Assembly (NCBI GenBank): GCA_025558095.1
Contig: JAIVFI010000028.1
Span: 496,001-560,000 of the forward strand
Length of the DNA: 64,000 bases
Source of the DNA: Hyaloraphidium curvatum SAG 235-1
Lineage: Eukaryota; Fungi; Monoblepharomycota
Direction: 5' to 3'
Of this stretch, positions 6,601 through 45,932 are shown piece after piece; within the stretch, counting starts at the first letter, position 1; each line of letters opens with the position of its first letter. A program made the translations under genes and the position numbers. The notes under the pieces were generated by a model. It was given only the letters and a program-made list of their open reading frames with translations. It was not told the DNA's origin and did not search any database.

Positions 6601-7361
6601 GAGTAGACCGTCTGCCCCTCGTGGCGGGTGACGGGCAGCGACTCGCCCGTGAGGGCGGACTGGTCGACCGAGAGCGGGAGCCGGGTGGGCTCGCCCGTGA
6701 CGTTGAGCCCGAGCAGGCGCGCATCGGCGGGCACGATGTCGCCGAGGCGGAGCACGACCACGTCGCCGGGGACCAGGAGGGAAGATTCGCTGCGCAATGG
6801 GCGCAGATCAGGGGCCTGTGGGGGCCGGGCATGCGCGTCGGTGCAACCCACACTTCGACGAGCTCGCCGTCGCGCCAGCACTTGCTCTTGAGCGCGAGCG
6901 TGTTCTTGAGCGCGTCCAGCGCCGACTCGGCCTTGGCCTCCTCCACGAACCCGATGATGGCGTTGATGAAGAGCACCCCCAGGATGATGCCGACGTCGAT
7001 CCAGTCCTGCACCACGGCGGCAATCACGACGGCGATTTCAAGGAGGTAAGCGAGCGGGCCGAGGAAGTACGACAGGAACTTGAGGAACGGGCTGGTCTTT
7101 TTTTCCGGGATCTCTGCAAACGGGGGCAGGGGGACGCCGCGGTGAGCGCGGCGGGCCGGCGTCGCGGGCGGGCGGCCCACCGTTGCGGCCGAACTGCGCC
7201 AGCCGAGCGGCGGCCTCGGCGGACGTCAGGCCGTGCCGCGGGTCCGTGTGGAGCAGCTCTTCGAGCTCCGGCGGCACGTCGTCGTCCGGCGCCTTGTGCT
7301 CCTCGACGGGCGCGGGGGCGGCGACGGCGGCGCCGTGCGCGGCGGGGGCGGCGGTTGCCAT
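3623..7361 (-). CDS. PMA1: P3A-type plasma-membrane H+-ATPase, multi-exon
   Basis: [14 protein letters not shown] (phospho-Asp), [42 protein letters not shown]. The intron junctions checked keep the frame. Confidence 0.95.
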
Positions 7362-8166
7362 GGTTGCGGGGTGCGGTGTTTCACAGCTTTCGCGAGAGTG
7401 CTTGGAGATAAGTTCGGCGGCCGGGAATTCCGCCGGCGGCACAGTTCCGAATGTCTCCAAAATGCAGAGTTACCGCTGATGTGGCGCGCGCTGAGCTGGC
7501 CCCCCTCTGAGACGCGGCCACCGCTGATCTTCACCGTCACAAGATAAGCACGAAAAGCAACGTCCGACCGACGGAAAATCTCGAGGGTGGTCGTTGCAAT
7601 GCAACGCTGGTCTCCGGATGCCGCGGAGAACCATCCCCGGCCGATTTGCTAAGGGGGCTTGGCCGTCTCCAGAACCTTGGCGGCAAACTCGGCGCAGTTG
7701 TTCCGACGGCCCGGATGAACGCGGAGGCTTCGCTGAGGCGATCAACTTTGACGCCTGGGGATCGTGGCTTTAGATCTTGATCTTCATCTTCATGATTTGG
7801 TAGAGATCCGCGGCCTCACCGGGCCCATTGACCAGTGTGCCCGATAGCATCGCCTGGAAGCAAGAATCCTCCCGCCATCGTCGCCGATCGCAACATTCAG
7901 GACCCGTACAATGCTCTGGTAACGCCGGAGGAGCATTCCATCGAGACCTGGAGGGGCAATGCGACCATCCCACGGGCACCATGCCCGTGCCGCGAATCCC
8001 GATCCGGAGCCCGCCGTGAGGCACATCGCGGCCGGGAAACGCGTGCACAGGGAGTCTGCGGTGGCCACGAGGCCCAGCAACCTTGCCTTGGAGGGATCCG
8101 AGGGGAAGCTGGTGGCGCCGTGGTTGTTGGCGTGCGTGTGTTGAAGTCAACACGCCGTCCCCCGCA

Positions 8167-9637
8167 ATGGACCCGGCGCCGGATCCCGCCGCTCCTGCGG
8201 CCCCGCTCGAATTCTCCGGCGACGAATGGCTCGCCGTCGTGCCCTCCCCGCCTCCGCGTCCTTTCTCCCTCGCGGGGCTGCAGCGCGGACGCCCGGCTCG
8301 CCGCGCCGCTCACCTTCCCCGCGCTGCTGGCCGCGATCCCTTCCCCACCCTTACGCGGCGCCGTGCAGTTCGAGCGCGCCACGGCGGGGCTGGCGCGCGC
8401 GGCTCCCAACCTCGTGGGCGCCGTATACTCCTTCTCCACCGTCCTCGTGGCCGCCGCCTGGGCCTTCGGCGGGGACCGGTTCGCGTTCCCGGCGCTCGTC
8501 GCGGCGTCGGTGGCGCAGGCCGTGCATGCCGCCTTCGTGATCGGGCTGCCGCTCGGTGCCGGGCCGGGGAGGAGCTTCCGGCTCGTGTTCCGGGCCACGG
8601 GGACGGAGCAGCTGTACGATGACCACGCTTACGCCGGGTTGGCAAGGTGGAGCATGCTTTGCCGTGCGGCGGGAGGGGACGACGCGGCTGCCGAGGGCGG
8701 CAGGTTGGAGGACGGCAAGTCCCACCGGGAGACGAGCCCGCTGGTCTCGCACGTGGACGGCGACCCCTTCTGCCCGTGCCCCGCGCCTTCCTGCGCGGGC
8801 GGCGTCGTTTCGTCCGCCTTCTGGAGGCGCATGCCGATGACGATCGCGGTCATGGTGCCGGACGTGATGACCACCGTCGCGCTGGCCTGGACCGCGCTGG
8901 TCACCCTCGCCCCCCGCACCTGGACGAGCCCCTGGGCCGCGCTCCTCGGCGCCTTGTACGTCGCCGTTGCGCTCCCGTACTACACCCAGCCGCACATCAA
9001 GGTCAGCATCGTCACCCCGCTCCTCGAACTGGCCCACCGCCTGCGCCACCGCGCCGCGCACCTCCTCCTCTCGGACTTCCTCTCCCGCTGCCGCGCAGGC
9101 ACCGCCCCCGACCCCTCCGTCGCGGAACCCTACGTGCGCCTGCACGACCTCCTCGCCGCCATGTGGCGCTCCCAATCCGACCACGCCTCCCATGGGCGCG
9201 GGTTCGTCGCCGCGCTGCTGGTGACCGCCGCGCTGGCGGGGATCGCGTCGGCGGGCGCGGGGTCGTGCGTGCCGGCGTGGGTGCTGTTCGCGTACGCGTG
9301 CTACTTCACGCTGTTCTTCCGGGATTTGCTGGCCATCGCCGCCGCCAACGCCTCCGTGGACTCGGTGGCAGGCCTGTACGCCCAGGCGCGCCGCGAACTC
9401 CGCCGCCTCGCGCTTTCGGGCTCCCCGCGCGCCGAGCACCTCCGCGATCACGAGGCGCAGCTCGCGCTGCTGGCGGACCTCGGGAGCGCGAGGGGCCGGT
9501 GGATGGGGTTCGGGGTGACGTACGGGACCGCGAGGGCGTTCGCGGCGACGGCCTTCACGGTGGCGCTGGGGCTGTGGACGCTGCTGAGGGGGACGGGGAT
9601 CGTGTTCACGATGGACAACGTGTGCCCGGCGCGGTGA
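8167..9637 (+). CDS. 7-TM membrane protein, possibly gustatory-receptor-like (7TMIC); +1 frameshift near 8281
   Basis: The N-terminus MDPAPD..EFSGDEWLAVVP lies in one frame and the body (ORF 7835-9637) in the +1 frame. Seven hydrophobic segments; HVDGDPFCPCPxxxCAG motif; C-terminus WMGFGVTYGTARAFAATAFTVALGLW..CPAR shared with the paralogue at 58793-60384. Confidence 0.7.
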
Positions 9638-9673: not shown

Positions 9674-10040
9674 TGCGCGGGAAAGAGGGCAATGCGACAC
9701 CGCGGTGCCAGATCATCCGTCCAGGGCGATGCTTATGGATGCAGAGATCGCGGACATTGCGGTGATCTCTCACCGCAAGGTGCTTGCCGCGCCTGTGTGG
9801 CTTCGAAAGGACCACAGTCTCCCAGTCCGTCCCCGGCACGCTCGAATTGCAATCAAGGCCCAGGGCCCCGGAGGTTCGTTACATCCAGCAAAATTCTTTT
9901 ATTGCAATGGTCCTCTCTGATGATTCACACGAATGCGGGCCGTGGGTTGTCCGGGAAGGGGAAAGATCTGCAGGAGCGAGCTCGATGGCCGCCCCGATTC
10001 ACCAACCCCCTTTTCGTCCCCTCACGGAGAAGTGCCCGCG

Positions 10041-11405
10041 ATGGCGAACGCGGCGCGGTCCGAGAGCGGCGACACGGACCCGGGCTACGCGGGCAGCGAG
10101 GCGGGCAGCGCCAAGACGGAGCCGGCCGACCCGCTGGAGCTGCTGCCCGCGGACGAGGAGGAGCCGCCGGCCGTCCACGCGGCGCCGCCGTCGCGGAAGC
10201 GCGGCCGCGGCTCGTTCGACGGCGCGCCGCGCGCGCAGCGCCCCGCCAAGAAGTGCGAGTGCGGCAAGGCGGCGCCGTCGTTCTGCCTGCCGACCGACGA
10301 CCGCGCGCGGTGGTGCGCCGCGTGCCCCGCGAAGCCCGCCGCCGGCGTGGTCAACGTCAAGAAGATCCGCTGCGAGTGCGGCAAGGCCGCCGCCGCGTTC
10401 GGCGACCGCGACGGCGCCTCGCGCTGGCCGCGGTGGTGCGACGACTGCCCCGGCAAGCCCGCCGACGCCGTGTTCCTGCGCCACCGCAAGTGCGAGTGCG
10501 GGATGGGCACGCCGCTCCTCGCCATGCCCGGCGACAGCCTGCCCAAGTGGTGCGCACGCTGCCCCGGCAGGCTCGCCGGCGCCGTCGACGTGCTCAACAA
10601 GAAATGCGCGTGCGGCGCCTCGCGCCCGCTGTTCGGCATGCCCGGCGACAAGAAGCCGACCTGGTGCCTCAAGTGCCCCGACAAGCCGCCCGGCACGGTC
10701 GACGTCAAGACGCACAAGTGCGAGTGCGGCGCCGTCCGCCCCGTCTACGGCCTGCCCGAGGACCGCAAGGCGCGCTGGTGCAGGCGCTGCCCCACCCGCC
10801 CCGCCGCCGCCATCAACGTCAAGAACCCCCGGTGCGAGTGCGGCGCCGCGCTGCCCTCGTTCGGCATGCCGACGGACGAGCGCCAGCGCTGGTGCGCAAA
10901 GTGCCCCGGCAGGCCCGTCACGGCCATCAACCTCAAGTACTTCAAGTCCCAAAAGTGCGCCCTCTGCACCTCCACCGCGTGCTACGGGCCCCCCGGGCAC
11001 CACGCCGTGCGGTGCCTGCAGCACCGCGCCGCCGGCATGGTCCTGGACCCGTGGCGGCCCTGCGTGCGGTGCAGGGAGCCCGCGACGTGGGGGTCCCTCG
11101 TCGGCCGCAACGAGCGGTGCGAGCTGCACGCGCACGTGGGCGAGATCGAGCTGGTGCTGCGGATCTGCGTGTGGTGCGGGAACCCCGCCGTGGCGGACTC
11201 GTACGGGTTCTGCGAGGCGTGCAACCCGCTCGAGTTCAACTTTGCGCGGATGGGGGACGCGGGGGACAAGCTGGTGGGGCAGATCGTTCCGGAGGGGTTC
11301 GATGGGGGGCTCGACGGGGAGTTCGAGGCGGACTTTAAGGGGGGGTTCGACGGCGGCGAGTTTGAGGTCGGGGCCGGTGTGGAGATCGAGGTCGAGGTCG
11401 AGTAG
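10041..11405 (+). CDS. EsV-1-7-like cysteine-rich repeat protein, intronless
   Basis: Six ~38-aa repeats KCxCG-x4/5-(F/Y)GxP-x5-WCxxCP-x8-V, then two CxxC..CxxH units and CxxC..GFCEACNP. Basic NLS-like N-terminus (RKRGR, RPAKK) and acidic tail. Confidence 0.75.
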   Translation: MANAARSESGDTDPGYAGSEAGSAKTEPADPLELLPADEEEPPAVHAAPPSRKRGRGSFDGAPRAQRPAKKCECGKAAPSFCLPTDDRARWCAACPAKPAAGVVNVKKIRCECGKAAAAFGDRDGASRWPRWCDDCPGKPADAVFLRHRKCECGMGTPLLAMPGDSLPKWCARCPGRLAGAVDVLNKKCACGASRPLFGMPGDKKPTWCLKCPDKPPGTVDVKTHKCECGAVRPVYGLPEDRKARWCRRCPTRPAAAINVKNPRCECGAALPSFGMPTDERQRWCAKCPGRPVTAINLKYFKSQKCALCTSTACYGPPGHHAVRCLQHRAAGMVLDPWRPCVRCREPATWGSLVGRNERCELHAHVGEIELVLRICVWCGNPAVADSYGFCEACNPLEFNFARMGDAGDKLVGQIVPEGFDGGLDGEFEADFKGGFDGGEFEVGAGVEIEVEVE

Positions 11406-11540: not shown

Positions 11541-12689
11541 CTACTTGGCCCCACGCACGTCCCTCGCGAACGCCGCGAGCTCCATGGCCAGCTCCTTGGG
11601 CCTCTCCATCGCGCCAAAGTGCCCGCCCCTCTCCATCACCGTCCACCTGACGATGTTGGTATAGGTCGTCTCGGCCACCTTGCGCGGGGTCCTGAAGATC
11701 TCGTTCACGTACTCGGCGTGCCCCGTCGGCACCCCTATCGTGCACCCAACGGGGAGCGGCCACTGCCCGTGGTGCCGCGCGTAGTACGGCCAGAAGGTCG
11801 ACCCGACGGCGCCGGTGAACCAGTACAGCGAGATGTTGGCGAGCACCCTGTCCTTGGACACGGTGCCCCACAGGTCGCCGCCGTGGTCCACCCACGCGTG
11901 GAATTTCTCCCCGATCCAGGCGGCCAGGCCCGCGGGGCTGTCGGTCAGCCCGACCGCGAGCGTCTGCGGTTTGGTCTGCTGGATCTGCCGGTACCCGATG
12001 CCGTCGAACGACCACTTGGCGACGGCGTCCTTCATCCGCTTTTCCTCTGCGGTGTCGCCGATGGCCGGGTTGGGGTCGCTCAGGTAGAGGTACGCCAGGT
12101 GCAGCCCCAGGATGCGGTCGGGGTGCTCCGCCGCGAGCCGCGCGGCGATCGCCGCGCCCCAATCCTCGCCAAAGACGAAGAACTTCCCGATCCCCAGCGC
12201 GGCCATGAAGTCGGCCAGCACCGCCGTCATCTCCGCGATGCCCATCCGCGGCTGGCCCTCCTTCCACGACAGCCCGAACCCGGGCAGCCCGGTCGCGACC
12301 ACCTCGAACGCGTCCTCCGGGTCCTCCGGGTCGGTGAGAAGAGGGATGATGTCCAGGAACTCGGCGATGCTGCCGGGCCAACCGTGCAGCACGAGCAGCA
12401 CCGGCGCGTTCGGGTTCCTTTTCGCGGGCGCGCGGATGCAGTGCACGCGGGTGCCGCGGACGTCGGCGACGAACTGCGGGTGCGCGTTCAGGTCCGATTG
12501 GAATTTCGCAAAGTCGAACTTGGTGGCCCAGTGGTCGATCAGGTCGCGGACGAAGGAGGGCGGGGTGCCCGGCGCCCACGCGTCGTCGAGCGGCGGGGAG
12601 TCCGGGAGGCGCGCGCGCGCGAGGCGGGCGCGGAGGTCGGCGATGTCCGCGTCCGGGATGGAGAACTTGAAGGGCTGAACGGCGGTCAT
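11541..12689 (-). CDS. Epoxide hydrolase (EHN + alpha/beta hydrolase), intronless
   Basis: PFKFSIPDADIADLRARL N-domain, HGWP oxyanion motif, GEDWG nucleophile, DSPAGLAAWIGEKF, GGHFGAME. Confidence 0.93.
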   Translation of the reverse strand: MTAVQPFKFSIPDADIADLRARLARARLPDSPPLDDAWAPGTPPSFVRDLIDHWATKFDFAKFQSDLNAHPQFVADVRGTRVHCIRAPAKRNPNAPVLLVLHGWPGSIAEFLDIIPLLTDPEDPEDAFEVVATGLPGFGLSWKEGQPRMGIAEMTAVLADFMAALGIGKFFVFGEDWGAAIAARLAAEHPDRILGLHLAYLYLSDPNPAIGDTAEEKRMKDAVAKWSFDGIGYRQIQQTKPQTLAVGLTDSPAGLAAWIGEKFHAWVDHGGDLWGTVSKDRVLANISLYWFTGAVGSTFWPYYARHHGQWPLPVGCTIGVPTGHAEYVNEIFRTPRKVAETTYTNIVRWTVMERGGHFGAMERPKELAMELAAFARDVRGAK

Positions 12690-12839
12690 TGTGGGTGAAG
12701 TTGGGTGGGAGACCCCGGTTGCTCTTTGCCTCCCACCGGTCGGCCCAACTCATCGCTCCCCAGGTACGCAAACAGAAGAGGGTGTCATCAATCAGCAAGG
12801 CGTCTCGAGTTCCAAAAGCTATATCTCTGACTGCTTGCT

Positions 12840-13597
12840 ATCCCGTGCGGTCCCGCGACCGGATCCTTCCCGCGATGCGCCCGCAAGATTCCAATTCCGG
12901 GCCCAGCCAAAGTATCCCCCAGCCCCCGCTTCCGGCATGCGACCCGGCCCCCGGTATGCTCAGAGCGCGACGGTTCACGCTGGCCAGCCTGTGGTACGAG
13001 AACTGGGTGGGTACGGGACCGGTTCAGTGCAACGATCCGCGCTTATCCGGGCGGGAACACCCTCGCCCATCCTTCGTGACAGGACCGGCATGTACCACTC
13101 GCCCTTCCACATGAGCTTCCACCCGACCATCATGCACAAGGTGTACGTCGCCGTTCTCAACCCGGCCCACGCTGCCAAGGACCAGAGCGACAAGACGGCC
13201 CGCTCCTCCCTGGCCATCATCGACCTCAAGAAGATGCAGATCATCAAGGAGATCCGCTACATCGTCCGCGACAACGCAGAGCATGTCCCTCACGGACGAC
13301 CACAAGTACCTGCTCATGGCCGTGGGCGGCTTCCAGCGCTACGAGTCGGGCACCGTCATCGTCGACGTCGAGACGGACGAGATCGTCGGCTTCCTGCCCG
13401 GGTCGCAGGGCTCGCACGACATCGCGCCGGTGTACACGTCCGTCGACAAGCTCAAGAACTCGCGGTCCGTCGCGCTCTGAGCACATCGGGGGCCGGGTCG
13501 CATGCCGGAAGCGGGATCTGGGGGATCCTTTGGGCTCGGAATTGGAACCTTGCGGGCGCATCGCGGGAATGACCCGGTTGCGAAACCGCACGGGGAT
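12840..13597. repeat. Imperfect inverted repeat, arms ~12840-12973 and ~13467-13597
   Basis: The left arm (atcccgtgcgg...ttcccgcgatgcgcccgcaag...cccgcttccggcatgcgacccggccccc...gctcagagcgcgacgg) aligns with the reverse complement of the right arm at about 85-90% identity by manual alignment. Confidence 0.9.
12974..13480 (+). pseudogene. C-terminal fragment of a thiocyanate-dehydrogenase (TcDH)-like copper beta-propeller, with one intron
   Basis: Reconstructed as ..ENW|TGMYHSPFHMSF..KVYVAV..SLAIIDL..IKEI..D-x-QSMSLTDDHKY..GGFQRYESG..DVETDEIVGFLPGSQGSHDIAPVYTSVDKLKNSRSVAL*. Intron ~13007-13082 (GTGGGT..TGACAG); +1 lesions at ~13006 and ~13275; no 5' end. TcDH similarity is recalled, not searched. 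Confidence 0.65.
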
Positions 13598-13667
13598 GTT
13601 AGAAACACAGACATAAACACGGTGTTGGGGCAGCTGAAGTCACATTACTTCCATTCTCCCCAGCTCT

Positions 13668-42377: not shown

Positions 42378-44073
42378 ATGGCATCGCAGCAGGCTCCGTC
42401 CGACGCGCCCTCGGGCCCCGGGAACCCGGGCAGCCTTGGCCCGCACGATGTCGGGGGGCTCACGTGGGCGGATTACGCCAAGATGCCGCTGGATCTGCGC
42501 GACCACGTCAAGGCTCACTGGGAGAAGGAGATGGACGTCCTGCTTGGCTTGCTCTGGTGTAGGCCACGTGCGCCGTCGGCTGCGCAACTCAATGCTCATG
42601 GACGCGCCGGACAGACAAGAAGATGATGAACATCGACCAGCTTCGCCGGGGAATCGAGTATCTGGAGCCTGAGGCTTATGCTACGTGGACCTACTACGGA
42701 AAATGGGCGGCCTCCATGACCAGGATCCTCGTCGAGAAGGGAGCCATCACGCAGGAGGAGATCGACGCCGAGCTCGGGCCCACCCAGTCCGAGGATAAGA
42801 TTGCCTTCAACGTCGGTGACCGGGTGACCGTCAAGCCGGAGCTCACCAAGTCGCGCTGGAGGAAGCCTCAGTGAGTGACATCGGTGTAGCAAGCATTCGT
42901 TCGCGGCTGAGCACCGGCTTTATTTCCAGCCTCCGCACCCCGGGCTACATCTACGGGTGCACGGGTATCGTCGAGCGCGTCGCCGGCGTGTTTCCCAACC
43001 CAGAAGTCGGAGCGTTCCGGACCTCGCATAAGATCATGTCGCCGCTTTACAGGTTGGTCCTTTGATATGTTTCATTTGGCATGGTTCTGACGGAAGGGAC
43101 AGGGTTCGGTTCAACCTCAAGGACGTCTGGCCCGAGAACCCGGACGGCGAAAACAACAACACCACCATCGACGTCGAAATTTACCAGCACTGGCTGGTCC
43201 CGGCTTCGTCGGCCGCGGCGCCTGCCCCCGCACCGGCGCGTTCGGCGCACGCTCATTCGCACGAGGGGCACTCCCACGATGGGCACTCGCACGGCGGCCA
43301 CTCGCACGACCATGACCACGACCACGACCATGACCACGCCGGCGGGGACCATGGTCACAAGCACGAAGAGCGCGCCCAGGTGGAACAGGCCGCGGTCGAC
43401 AAGGAGGGCGAGCCGCACCCCGAGCAGACCCTCGCCGCCGCCCTCTTGAACCTCTGCGTGGCCAAGGGCATCGTGACCAGGGAAGAAATCAGGAGCTCCA
43501 TCGACCAGCAAGACACGCAGTACGCGGGGATGACGGCGGGACCGATGCTGGTCGCGAAAGCCTGGGTCGACCCGGAGTTCCGGGAGAGGCTCGTCAAGGA
43601 CTGCAAGGCGGCATCGGCAGAACTGGGGCTGAAGACCACCACCGGTGCCGAGCCGGAGATGGTCGCGGTCCTCAACGAACCTGGAAGGCACAACGTCGTC
43701 GTTTGCACCTTGTGCAGCTGCTGTGAGTTGCTCGTGCCTCCGTCTTTGTTTCCGGCCTCACGCGCTCGACGCAGATCCCCGCGCGGTGCTTGGCTTTCCG
43801 CCGGACTGGTACAAGAGCCGAACGTACCGCAGCCGGATGGTCCGCAACCCACGCGCGCTCCTCGCTGAAGCCTTCGACCTCGTCATCCCCGAATCGACCG
43901 AGCTCCGCGTCCACGACTCCAACGCCGACCTGCGCTACATCGTGATCCCGGAGCGGCCGGCGGGCACCGAGGGCTGGAGTGAGGAGAAGCTGAGGTCGCT
44001 GGTGACCCGCGATACCATGATAGGCGTCGCGGTGTGCAAGGTTCCCAGCTCGGAGGGCACGCCCAAGATTTGA
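42378..44073 (+). CDS. Fused beta-alpha cobalt-type nitrile hydratase, copy 1 (5 exons)
   Basis: Beta part: GPHDVGG, WEKE, LRRGIE, YYGKW, FNVGDRV, KPH|LRTPGY, PLYR|VRF. His-rich linker. Alpha part: [22 protein letters not shown]|[40 protein letters not shown]. Confidence 0.93.
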
Positions 44074-44252
44074 TGCAGATCACGTGCAGGACTAGCCTTG
44101 GCGGACAGTAGTTTCTCGTTGATTTTGCGCGAGGAAAGATCTGACGGAGGATCCGATCGACAATCTTCTTCGTGCATGGGCGCTCCCGATCGCGCAACGC
44201 CGTCAACAATCTGTCCCCCTTCTCGAATCCTCCGTTCCGTCAAGAGCACACG

Positions 44253-45932
44253 ATGCCATCTGACACGGGATCGCCCGAGGACCATTCGGGTCCGGGACAC
44301 CCCGGCACCCTCGGTCCGCACGACGTAGGCGGGCTCACATCGGCGGAGTACGCCAAGTTGCCGCTCGACCTTCGGGAGCACCCCAAGAACCAGTGGGAGA
44401 AGGAAATGGACGTGCTCTTTGGCGTCATATGGTGTCGGTGATTTGCATACGTGGAAACCATGTGTCCGTACCGACGCGTTTGCCGGGCGACAGACAGGCA
44501 GCTCATCAGCCTGGATCAGTTCCGGCGCGGCATCGAGTATTTGGAACCGGAGGCATACAGCACGTGGTCCTACTACGGCAAATGGGCTGCCACGATGACC
44601 CGATCTTTGATCGAGAACGGAGCGGTTACCCAAGAGGAGATTGACGCCGAGTTGGGACCCGTCGAGTCGGAGGAGAAGGTTGCCTTCGCCGTCGGCGACC
44701 GGGTGACCGTCAAGCCGGAGCTCACCAAGTCGCGCTGGAGGAAGCCGCAGTACGTCGTTTCGTGGGGTGCTTGGCTCGCGGTTCCTGGGCCAACCGAGCT
44801 CTCCCAGCCTCCGGACCCCAGGTTACATCTTTGGGTGTTCCGGCATCGTGGAACGCGTTGCCGGCGTGTTTCCCAATCCCGAGGTTGGAGCCTTCCGGAT
44901 TTCGCACCAGATTATGTCGCCCTTGTATCGGTCGGTCTCTTCGTTTGTCGCGTTGAGCCCGAACTCACGCTGACACCGCTCGACCAGAGTCCGCTTCAAC
45001 CTCAAGGACGTCTGGCCGGAGAACCCGGACGGCGAGAACAACAATACGACGATCGATGTGGAGATCTACCAGCACTGGCTCGTTCCTGCCTCAACTGCTC
45101 CGGCTTCTGCCCCCGTCGCAAGGTCGGAGTCGTCTCACGGCGGACACTCCCACGACGGACGCTCGCACGGCGGCCACTCGCACGACCATGACCATGATCA
45201 TGATCATGACCACGCCGGCGGGGATCACGGGCACAAGCACGAAGCGCGGGCCGAGGTGGAGCAGGCGGCGGTCGACAAGGAGGGCGAACCGCACCCCGAG
45301 CAGACGCTGGCGACCGCCCTACTCAACATCTGCATTGCAAAGGGCTGGACAACGAGGGAGGAGATCCGGAAGATGATCGAGGACCAGGATGCTGCTTACG
45401 CAGGGAATGTCACCGGGCCGATCCTCGTGGCGCGTTCGTGGGTCGATCCCGCCTTCAAGGAGAGGCTAATCCGGGACTGCAAGGCTGCGGCGGCGGAGCT
45501 GGACCTGAGAGCGGATTCTGACGACGAGCCGGAAATGGTTGCCATCGCCAACGGGCCCGGGGTCCATAATGTGACCGTGTGCACGCTTTGCTCTTGCTGT
45601 GAGTCTTCTCCGTGGCATATTCGGTCGCGTCAACCTCACTGCCGCAATCAGATCCCCGTGCTGTACTCGGGTTCCCACCAGATTGGTTCAAGAGCCGCAC
45701 CTACCGGGCACGGATGGTCCGGGCGCCTCGGGCCCTCCTCGCCGAGGCTTTCGGCCTGGTCGTCCCGGAATCCACGGAGCTCCGCGTGCACGACTCGACC
45801 GCGGACCTGCGCTACATCGTGATCCCGGAGCGACCGGCCGGAACGGAGGGATGGAGCGAGGAGAAGCTGAGGACCCTTATCACGCGCGACACGATGATCG
45901 GCGTCGCGGTCTGCAAGGTGCCGGCGTCCTAG
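44253..45932 (+). CDS. Fused beta-alpha cobalt-type nitrile hydratase, copy 2 (5 exons)
   Basis: Same architecture and the same four intron positions as copy 1; TVCTLCSC|YP; His-rich linker [27 protein letters not shown]. Confidence 0.93.

Follow-up and report, generated by a model that had tools for sequence, protein, structure and literature searches.

Thiocyanate dehydrogenase (TcDH) is an enzyme with an unusual three-copper site that has been studied in a few sulfur-oxidising bacteria, and its residue His482 is presumably a ligand of the third copper. Thirteen active-site residues were defined in PMC6504805, in which eukaryotes and fungi are unmentioned. Thiocyanate is bound between the three coppers, water is added to its carbon, and two electrons leave via copper to an outside acceptor (PMC9456337). 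The closest characterised systems to the protein family reported here are the TcDHs (EC 1.8.2.7) of Thioalkalivibrio paradoxus (PDB 5F75) and Pelomicrobium methylotrophicum (PDB 8Q9X), along with laboratory mutants of both types in which the His at position 482 is replaced by Gln (TcDH His482Gln, PDB 6SJI; pmTcDH H447Q, PDB 8YU5 and 8YU6). Literature containing both 'thiocyanate dehydrogenase' and 'TcDH' concerns only bacteria as far as titles and abstracts go, with passing mention elsewhere in the texts possible, and at that level we found no published report of a eukaryotic TcDH homologue.

Within the window, by which we mean the whole 64,000-nucleotide stretch of the Hyaloraphidium curvatum genome that was analysed, a preliminary description based on the letters alone had placed a fragment of a TcDH-like gene. 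Such a coding stretch is present on the + strand at the place given. Its main piece (13083–13480), delimited by alignments and a PDB search, encodes the last 131 residues (457/458–588) of a TcDH-like beta-propeller. In the PDB sequence search the last 65 codons of this piece matched nine TcDH sequences at E 1e-8, with everything else at E ≥0.3; the first half alone had no match in the PDB and could be aligned only via the intact paralogue on contig C5 of the same genome, to which the two halves are 60% and 81% identical (E 3e-47 combined). The host codon bias noted earlier was borne out, with a GC3 of 0.98 and A or T at only 2 of 130 third positions, and no in-frame stop occurs in 13083–13480 ahead of the terminal stop codon (13478–13480). 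The Phe-His (13105–13110), Gln (13277–13279), His-Asp (13415–13420) and Arg motifs also lie where they had been called. In TcDH numbering, the remnant retains Phe436, His437, Gln at 482, His528, Asp529 and Arg544; among the 13 active-site residues, this leaves His437, His528, Asp529 and Arg544 in place and His482 read as Gln, with the other eight deleted.

The gene is more heavily damaged than the continuous frame of about 140 residues that had been proposed. The codons upstream of the intron-like stretch (12974–13006, +), identified by a short-query search of the window, correspond to residues 141–151 of the intact protein, being identical at 11 of 11 positions to a homologue from the chytrid Borealophlyctis (E 5e-9) and at 9 of 10 to the C5 paralogue, and the part downstream resumes only at residue 457/458. 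Residues 1–140 and 152–457 are missing, the latter through a deletion of ~306 codons at or beside the intron, so that only 141–151 and 458–588 are left. Between the two pieces lies a 76-nt GT..AG stretch (13007–13082, +), recognised by its ends and by the start of an RNA contig, at the same Trp151 as an intron of the C5 paralogue. The suggestion of a spliceosomal intron is correct to this extent, but removing the stretch yields no continuous frame; the last intron of C5 is absent from the remnant. One of the two +1 lesions originally reported is real, an extra A at 13273–13274 (+), one codon ahead of the Gln482 codon and seen in both the alignment and an RNA contig, while the other is the site of the large deletion. 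In two pieces and frameshifted, the remnant lacks most blades of a complete seven-bladed beta-propeller and can build neither that fold nor a copper site. Taken alone, it is a pseudogene of the common sort that has been neatly rearranged. Translation starting at an internal ATG (13090 or 13283) might yield a small working peptide, in keeping with the intact codon bias, the absence of in-frame stops and the presence of RNA, but the frameshift divides the product into stretches of 61 and 65 residues in frame, equal to one or two blades apiece, with no anchor and without the eight deleted active-site residues, which makes this reading extremely unlikely. We consider it highly probable that the window carries a recently broken paralogue, a pseudogene, of a domesticated TcDH-like gene.

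The prediction that an intact, intron-bearing copy would exist elsewhere proved right. A genome search of H. curvatum returned contig C5 as the sole other locus, and nothing else derived from the deleted middle of the window copy. The C5 gene is a single open frame of 588 amino acids in five exons (L007 6203–5931, 5864–5686, 5624–5228, 5160–4306 and 4250–4188, from the spliced frame) separated by four GT-AG introns of 55–67 nt. Its product is identical to the public protein KAI9030567.1 of Hyaloraphidium curvatum (P0272), which stood in for it in structure prediction and alignment; searches with spliced models went one exon at a time, and the remnant was joined with an X at its break. Matches to generic propellers had been named as the outcome that would count against a TcDH relationship. 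The best matches are instead to TcDH, both in sequence (E 7e-104) and in fold, with the predicted model (pLDDT 84 overall, low only for residues 1–93) aligning to TcDH in Foldseek at E 1e-56, a TM-score of 0.94–0.96 normalised by target, an rmsd of 1.5–2.1 Å and 36–40% identity, compared with E 5e-13 for the next-best propeller. No Pfam or NCBIfam model matches the C5 protein, and matches of L-NosZ and PQQ-propeller models to its bacterial relatives are weak and far under the cut-off.

Mapping onto PDB 5F75 was then used to check the copper ligands on this full-length copy. The C5 protein keeps 12 of the 13 active-site residues: K127, H159, H160, Q180, H232 and E316 correspond to TcDH Lys103, His135, His136, Gln156, His206 and Glu288, and D342, H411, H466, H568, D569 and R584 to Asp314, His381, His437, His528, Asp529 and Arg544. 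The thirteenth, His482, is Q522; Pro291 and Phe436 of TcDH are likewise present. C5 is like 5F75 and 8Q9X in fold and in 12 of 13 residues, but differs from them in having Gln at the His482 position, introns, and an N-terminal membrane segment instead of a Tat signal. That segment is a single hydrophobic stretch near residues 44–66 (mean hydropathy 2.3) and, together with two N-glycosylation sequons, suggests the topology of a type II membrane protein. Judged by its sequence and predicted model, C5 is TcDH-like in fold and residues; with Gln at position 482 and an activity that is still putative, it is better kept apart from the true TcDHs.

The living C5 gene would encode a membrane-anchored copper oxidoreductase of type II orientation, facing the secretory lumen or the cell surface. 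Its chemistry would be that of TcDH, with a copper-bound substrate, water activated by His136 and Glu288, and electrons passing through copper to an outside acceptor, but with a third copper site that is probably weakened or altered. The host is a heterotrophic fungus, in which, unlike the bacterial case, no periplasmic cytochrome c552 partner is expected, and the enzyme may serve to obtain nitrogen or to detoxify, rather than to supply energy. Thiocyanate is a plausible candidate substrate, though its chance falls somewhat below even; a related small C1 compound containing sulfur and nitrogen is to be given the same weight, and some other substrate is improbable. No match to the cyanase domain PF02560 was obtained in the H. 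curvatum genome, in a search whose control was positive in only 1 of 14 genomes and in which introns split the domain.

The single His-to-Gln exchange, which the preliminary description had picked up in the fragment, is characteristic of the branch to which these genes belong. The mutant chains 6SJI, 8YU5 and 8YU6, with Gln introduced at this very position, are the top sequence matches of the C5 protein in the PDB; what was engineered in those laboratory mutants occurs naturally here across an entire branch. In a sample of 309 sequences, biased toward the Gln482 branch, position 482 was Gln in 259, Glu in 13 (Synechocystis and kin) and His in 33, and all eukaryotic copies reaching the position have Gln. 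From this alignment, Gln at 482 is the normal state of the branch and not a lesion. Glu at the His482 position in Synechocystis, Synechococcus PCC 6312 and Neosynechococcus (P0165, P0166, P0316–P0324) represents a third natural state, in strains that can be cultured. In the three fungal proteins (P0272, at residue 519, L014 and L016) a His stands three residues before Gln482; it is missing in algae and bacteria, and is Arg in the remnant.

The family, which the preliminary description knew only from sulfur oxidisers, is not confined to them and includes hundreds of cyanobacterial and alphaproteobacterial members. Closest among the bacteria are uncharacterised Gln482/Glu482 proteins of picocyanobacteria (Cyanobium, Vulcanococcus, Synechococcus CS-1325), Synechocystis and Alphaproteobacteria (Reyranella, Ancylobacter), at 48–50% identity and with the active-site pattern of C5. 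They differ in being bacterial, and downstream of most of their genes lie those for a MacB/FtsX permease and an ABC ATPase. Full-length intron-bearing homologues, another point on which the original proposal depended, are present in H. curvatum and in other eukaryotes. That of Borealophlyctis nickersoniae (KAJ3295275/6; L016:3495–5614) has six introns and is annotated as two genes; with an in-frame TGA at codon 336 and an extra base (+1) near codon 435, it is either a second broken fungal copy or the product of assembly errors. A metagenomic chytrid-like contig (L014) has most of its intron positions in common with Borealophlyctis and is open across the 513 residues covered. Green-algal or alga-like homologues comprise Scenedesmus sp. 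PABB004 KAF8073208.1, an intronless 2.3-kb contig (P0274), and L017, L105 and P0350. A metagenome scan for relatives returned bacterial loci only.

In a maximum-likelihood tree, rooted on His482 rows from Thiohalobacter and unnamed sources only (no wild-type Thioalkalivibrio or Pelomicrobium TcDH), the fungal sequences were grouped with support of 100/100 and fungi plus algae with 100/99, although the latter joins two long branches; this group was sister to the picocyanobacteria (99/99) and lay inside the cyanobacteria (100/100). With either fungi or algae left out, the other still joined the picocyanobacteria. The fungi were sister to, and not nested in, the five algal rows. The fungal and algal genes appear to be one clade beside the picocyanobacterial proteins, within a large uncharacterised Gln/Glu482 branch. 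Eukaryotes would have acquired the gene from the picocyanobacterial side; it is common to chytrids and green algae, a distribution that would call for at least one further eukaryote-to-eukaryote transfer or for two transfers from close donors. It is possible, if still tentative, that the Gln482 branch, which is much wider than that of the described His482 TcDHs, is a copper enzyme in its own right, with a two-copper or an altered three-copper site, used by cyanobacteria, green algae and chytrids on thiocyanate or a related natural compound and passed from picocyanobacteria to algae and on to fungi. If so, there is an unrecognised eukaryotic route of C–S bond oxidation in fresh water. A spliced, membrane-anchored homologue makes two questions testable: how far the third copper site depends on His482, and whether eukaryotes oxidise thiocyanate or a related compound by TcDH chemistry.

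Returning to the window, where the copy is only a fragment of such an enzyme, the initial outline of the feature had the coding piece right and missed the 128-bp inverted repeat that brackets it. Alignment showed that the right arm (13467–13594, +) is the 3' end of the gene itself, comprising its last four codons, the stop and the 3' UTR, and the left arm (12842–12973, −) is an inverted copy of the same. Over 132 columns the arms show 12 substitutions and one 4-nt indel (9% different), and no further copy of them was found in the H. curvatum genome search. Gene fragments lying between inverted repeats of ~130 bp are reminiscent of Pack-MULE-like elements, and the two gene pieces could be taken for a Pack-type DNA transposon that captured them between its terminal inverted repeats. 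We rejected this reading and hold it to be very improbable: the termini are not repeated in the genome, the conserved final codons and the stop of the gene itself lie within the arms, and inspection by eye revealed no target-site duplication at the outer arm ends.

Inverted repeats can also mislead assemblers, so an intact gene might have been collapsed between the two arms. The arms, however, differ at 12 sites and by an indel, unlike a collapsed repeat, and public contigs reproduce most of the structure. A DNA contig covering 12975–13142 with zero differences bridges the deletion, another (13446–13629) covers the right arm and both its flanks, and the frameshift at 13273–13274 is carried ungapped by an RNA contig, whose short side, at 30 letters, is one below the bridging threshold. 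The junction 12973/12974 lies where two contigs leave a gap of 4 bases and is unbridged, and the DNA runs behind this support may be the assembly's own sample; at neither junction does any contig show an alternative sequence. Taken together, these observations leave an assembly artefact very unlikely. At 12923, one base of a C-run in the left arm is absent in a DNA contig, a small assembly or strain difference. A 151-nt contig from a 2025 run of another sample (X4) is 96% identical to the end of the gene and the right arm (13391–13533), which suggests that a related strain carries the window paralogue, broken or not.

The remnant is weakly transcribed. RNA contigs, which are uninformative on transcript ends and strand, span 13082–13469, beginning at the splice acceptor, with none over the intron 13007–13082; contig depth, a poor measure, was 5–12 as against 26 and 285 at neighbouring genes. 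Upstream, the joint of an RNA contig (12703>12763) defines a 59-nt GT-AG intron (12705–12763, +) in a transcript that runs into the left arm and is antisense to an epoxide hydrolase gene (11541–12689, −). This spliced transcript may represent the 5' leader that the gene had before it was broken. The contig with this intron ends at 12878, where 14 loose letters resemble the end of the right arm.

Given these transcripts, the remnant locus could be a working hairpin-RNA gene, in which the arms fold the transcript, which is then diced and regulates the C5 paralogue or the epoxide hydrolase gene. Pseudogene-derived hairpin RNA loci, such as those giving rise to small RNAs in rice (PMC2708354), likewise combine a dead duplicate, an inverted repeat and residual transcription. 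The predicted fold is strong (−442 kcal/mol, z −16.9), as it would be for any inverted repeat; the RNA contigs extend over the loop (13082–13469) as well as the left flank, and end on reaching the arms or inside them; Argonaute, Dicer and RdRP all have matches in the H. curvatum genome; and a single 21-nt perfect match to the C5 mRNA is located in the loop. In contrast to the rice type, the stem of the remnant, which is 3' UTR, has no likeness to the 3' UTR of the living C5 paralogue (best local match 13 nt), and the locus is known from DNA and RNA contigs only. The arm differences run in both directions with no sign of maintained pairing, and the low depth comes from contigs in which strand and ends are invisible. 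We regard a functional hairpin as unlikely.

The age of the duplication can be gauged from the two H. curvatum copies. The remnant shares 70% of its amino acids and ~76% of its nucleotides with C5, with a dN of 0.27 and a dS of 0.60, which at such GC3 is probably underestimated and is better stated as at least 0.6. A 9-residue insertion is common to both copies and absent in all other homologues, and relative to Borealophlyctis each copy has 10 lineage-specific changes, mostly conservative. The shared insertion, the divergence, the equal number of changes in each copy and the high GC3 argue that the remnant and C5 are old paralogues and that the window copy still worked through most of the period since they separated. 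We infer that it remained under selection until recently. The sequence of events would be an ancient duplication inside the Hyaloraphidium lineage (shared insertion, dS at least 0.6), purifying selection on both copies, and a later collapse of the window copy by deletion. What the window copy adds is that in H. curvatum the gene was duplicated and both copies were kept for long before one was lost.

Two routes to the collapsed state may be envisaged. A head-to-head pair of near-twin genes might have lost its inner parts in a late deletion, or a template switch during inverted duplication might have replaced the 5' coding part of one gene with an inverted copy of its 3' end. When decay was simulated at 5% per site (half the arm difference), assuming symmetric mutation in a GC-rich genome, third positions as poor in A/T as those observed had P = 0.006 from a starting GC3 of 0.97 and P = 0.07 from 1.0. 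The low A/T count would be unlikely had the remnant decayed for as long as the arms have diverged, which favours a late deletion between head-to-head near-twin genes. The spliced leader upstream on the + strand is easier to reconcile with inverted duplication of a single gene than with a collapsed pair. On balance, the near-twin pair appears slightly the better-placed of the two, with the template switch close behind.

Several other genes in the window were examined alongside the remnant. A tandem pair of nitrile hydratases, each a single chain (beta, His-rich linker, alpha) encoded with introns, was identified by Pfam and by sequence at 42378–44074 and 44254–45932 (+); fused eukaryotic nitrile hydratases are known. 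A 'nitrile/thiocyanate cluster' is not supported: the amidase and both nitrile hydratase fusions are genuine, but 29 kb separates the hydratases from the remnant, and the neighbours seen around the C5, Borealophlyctis and Scenedesmus genes are different. By eye, paralogues belonging to one family of multi-pass membrane proteins lie on both sides of the C5 gene (L007:3000–4100 and 6630–8000, −), and a gene of similar appearance occurs in the window at 7835–9637 (+), 3 kb from the remnant. Between that gene and the remnant, 9933–11405 (+) encodes a 490-aa protein with EsV-1-7 cysteine-rich repeats (PF19114) and an acidic tail.
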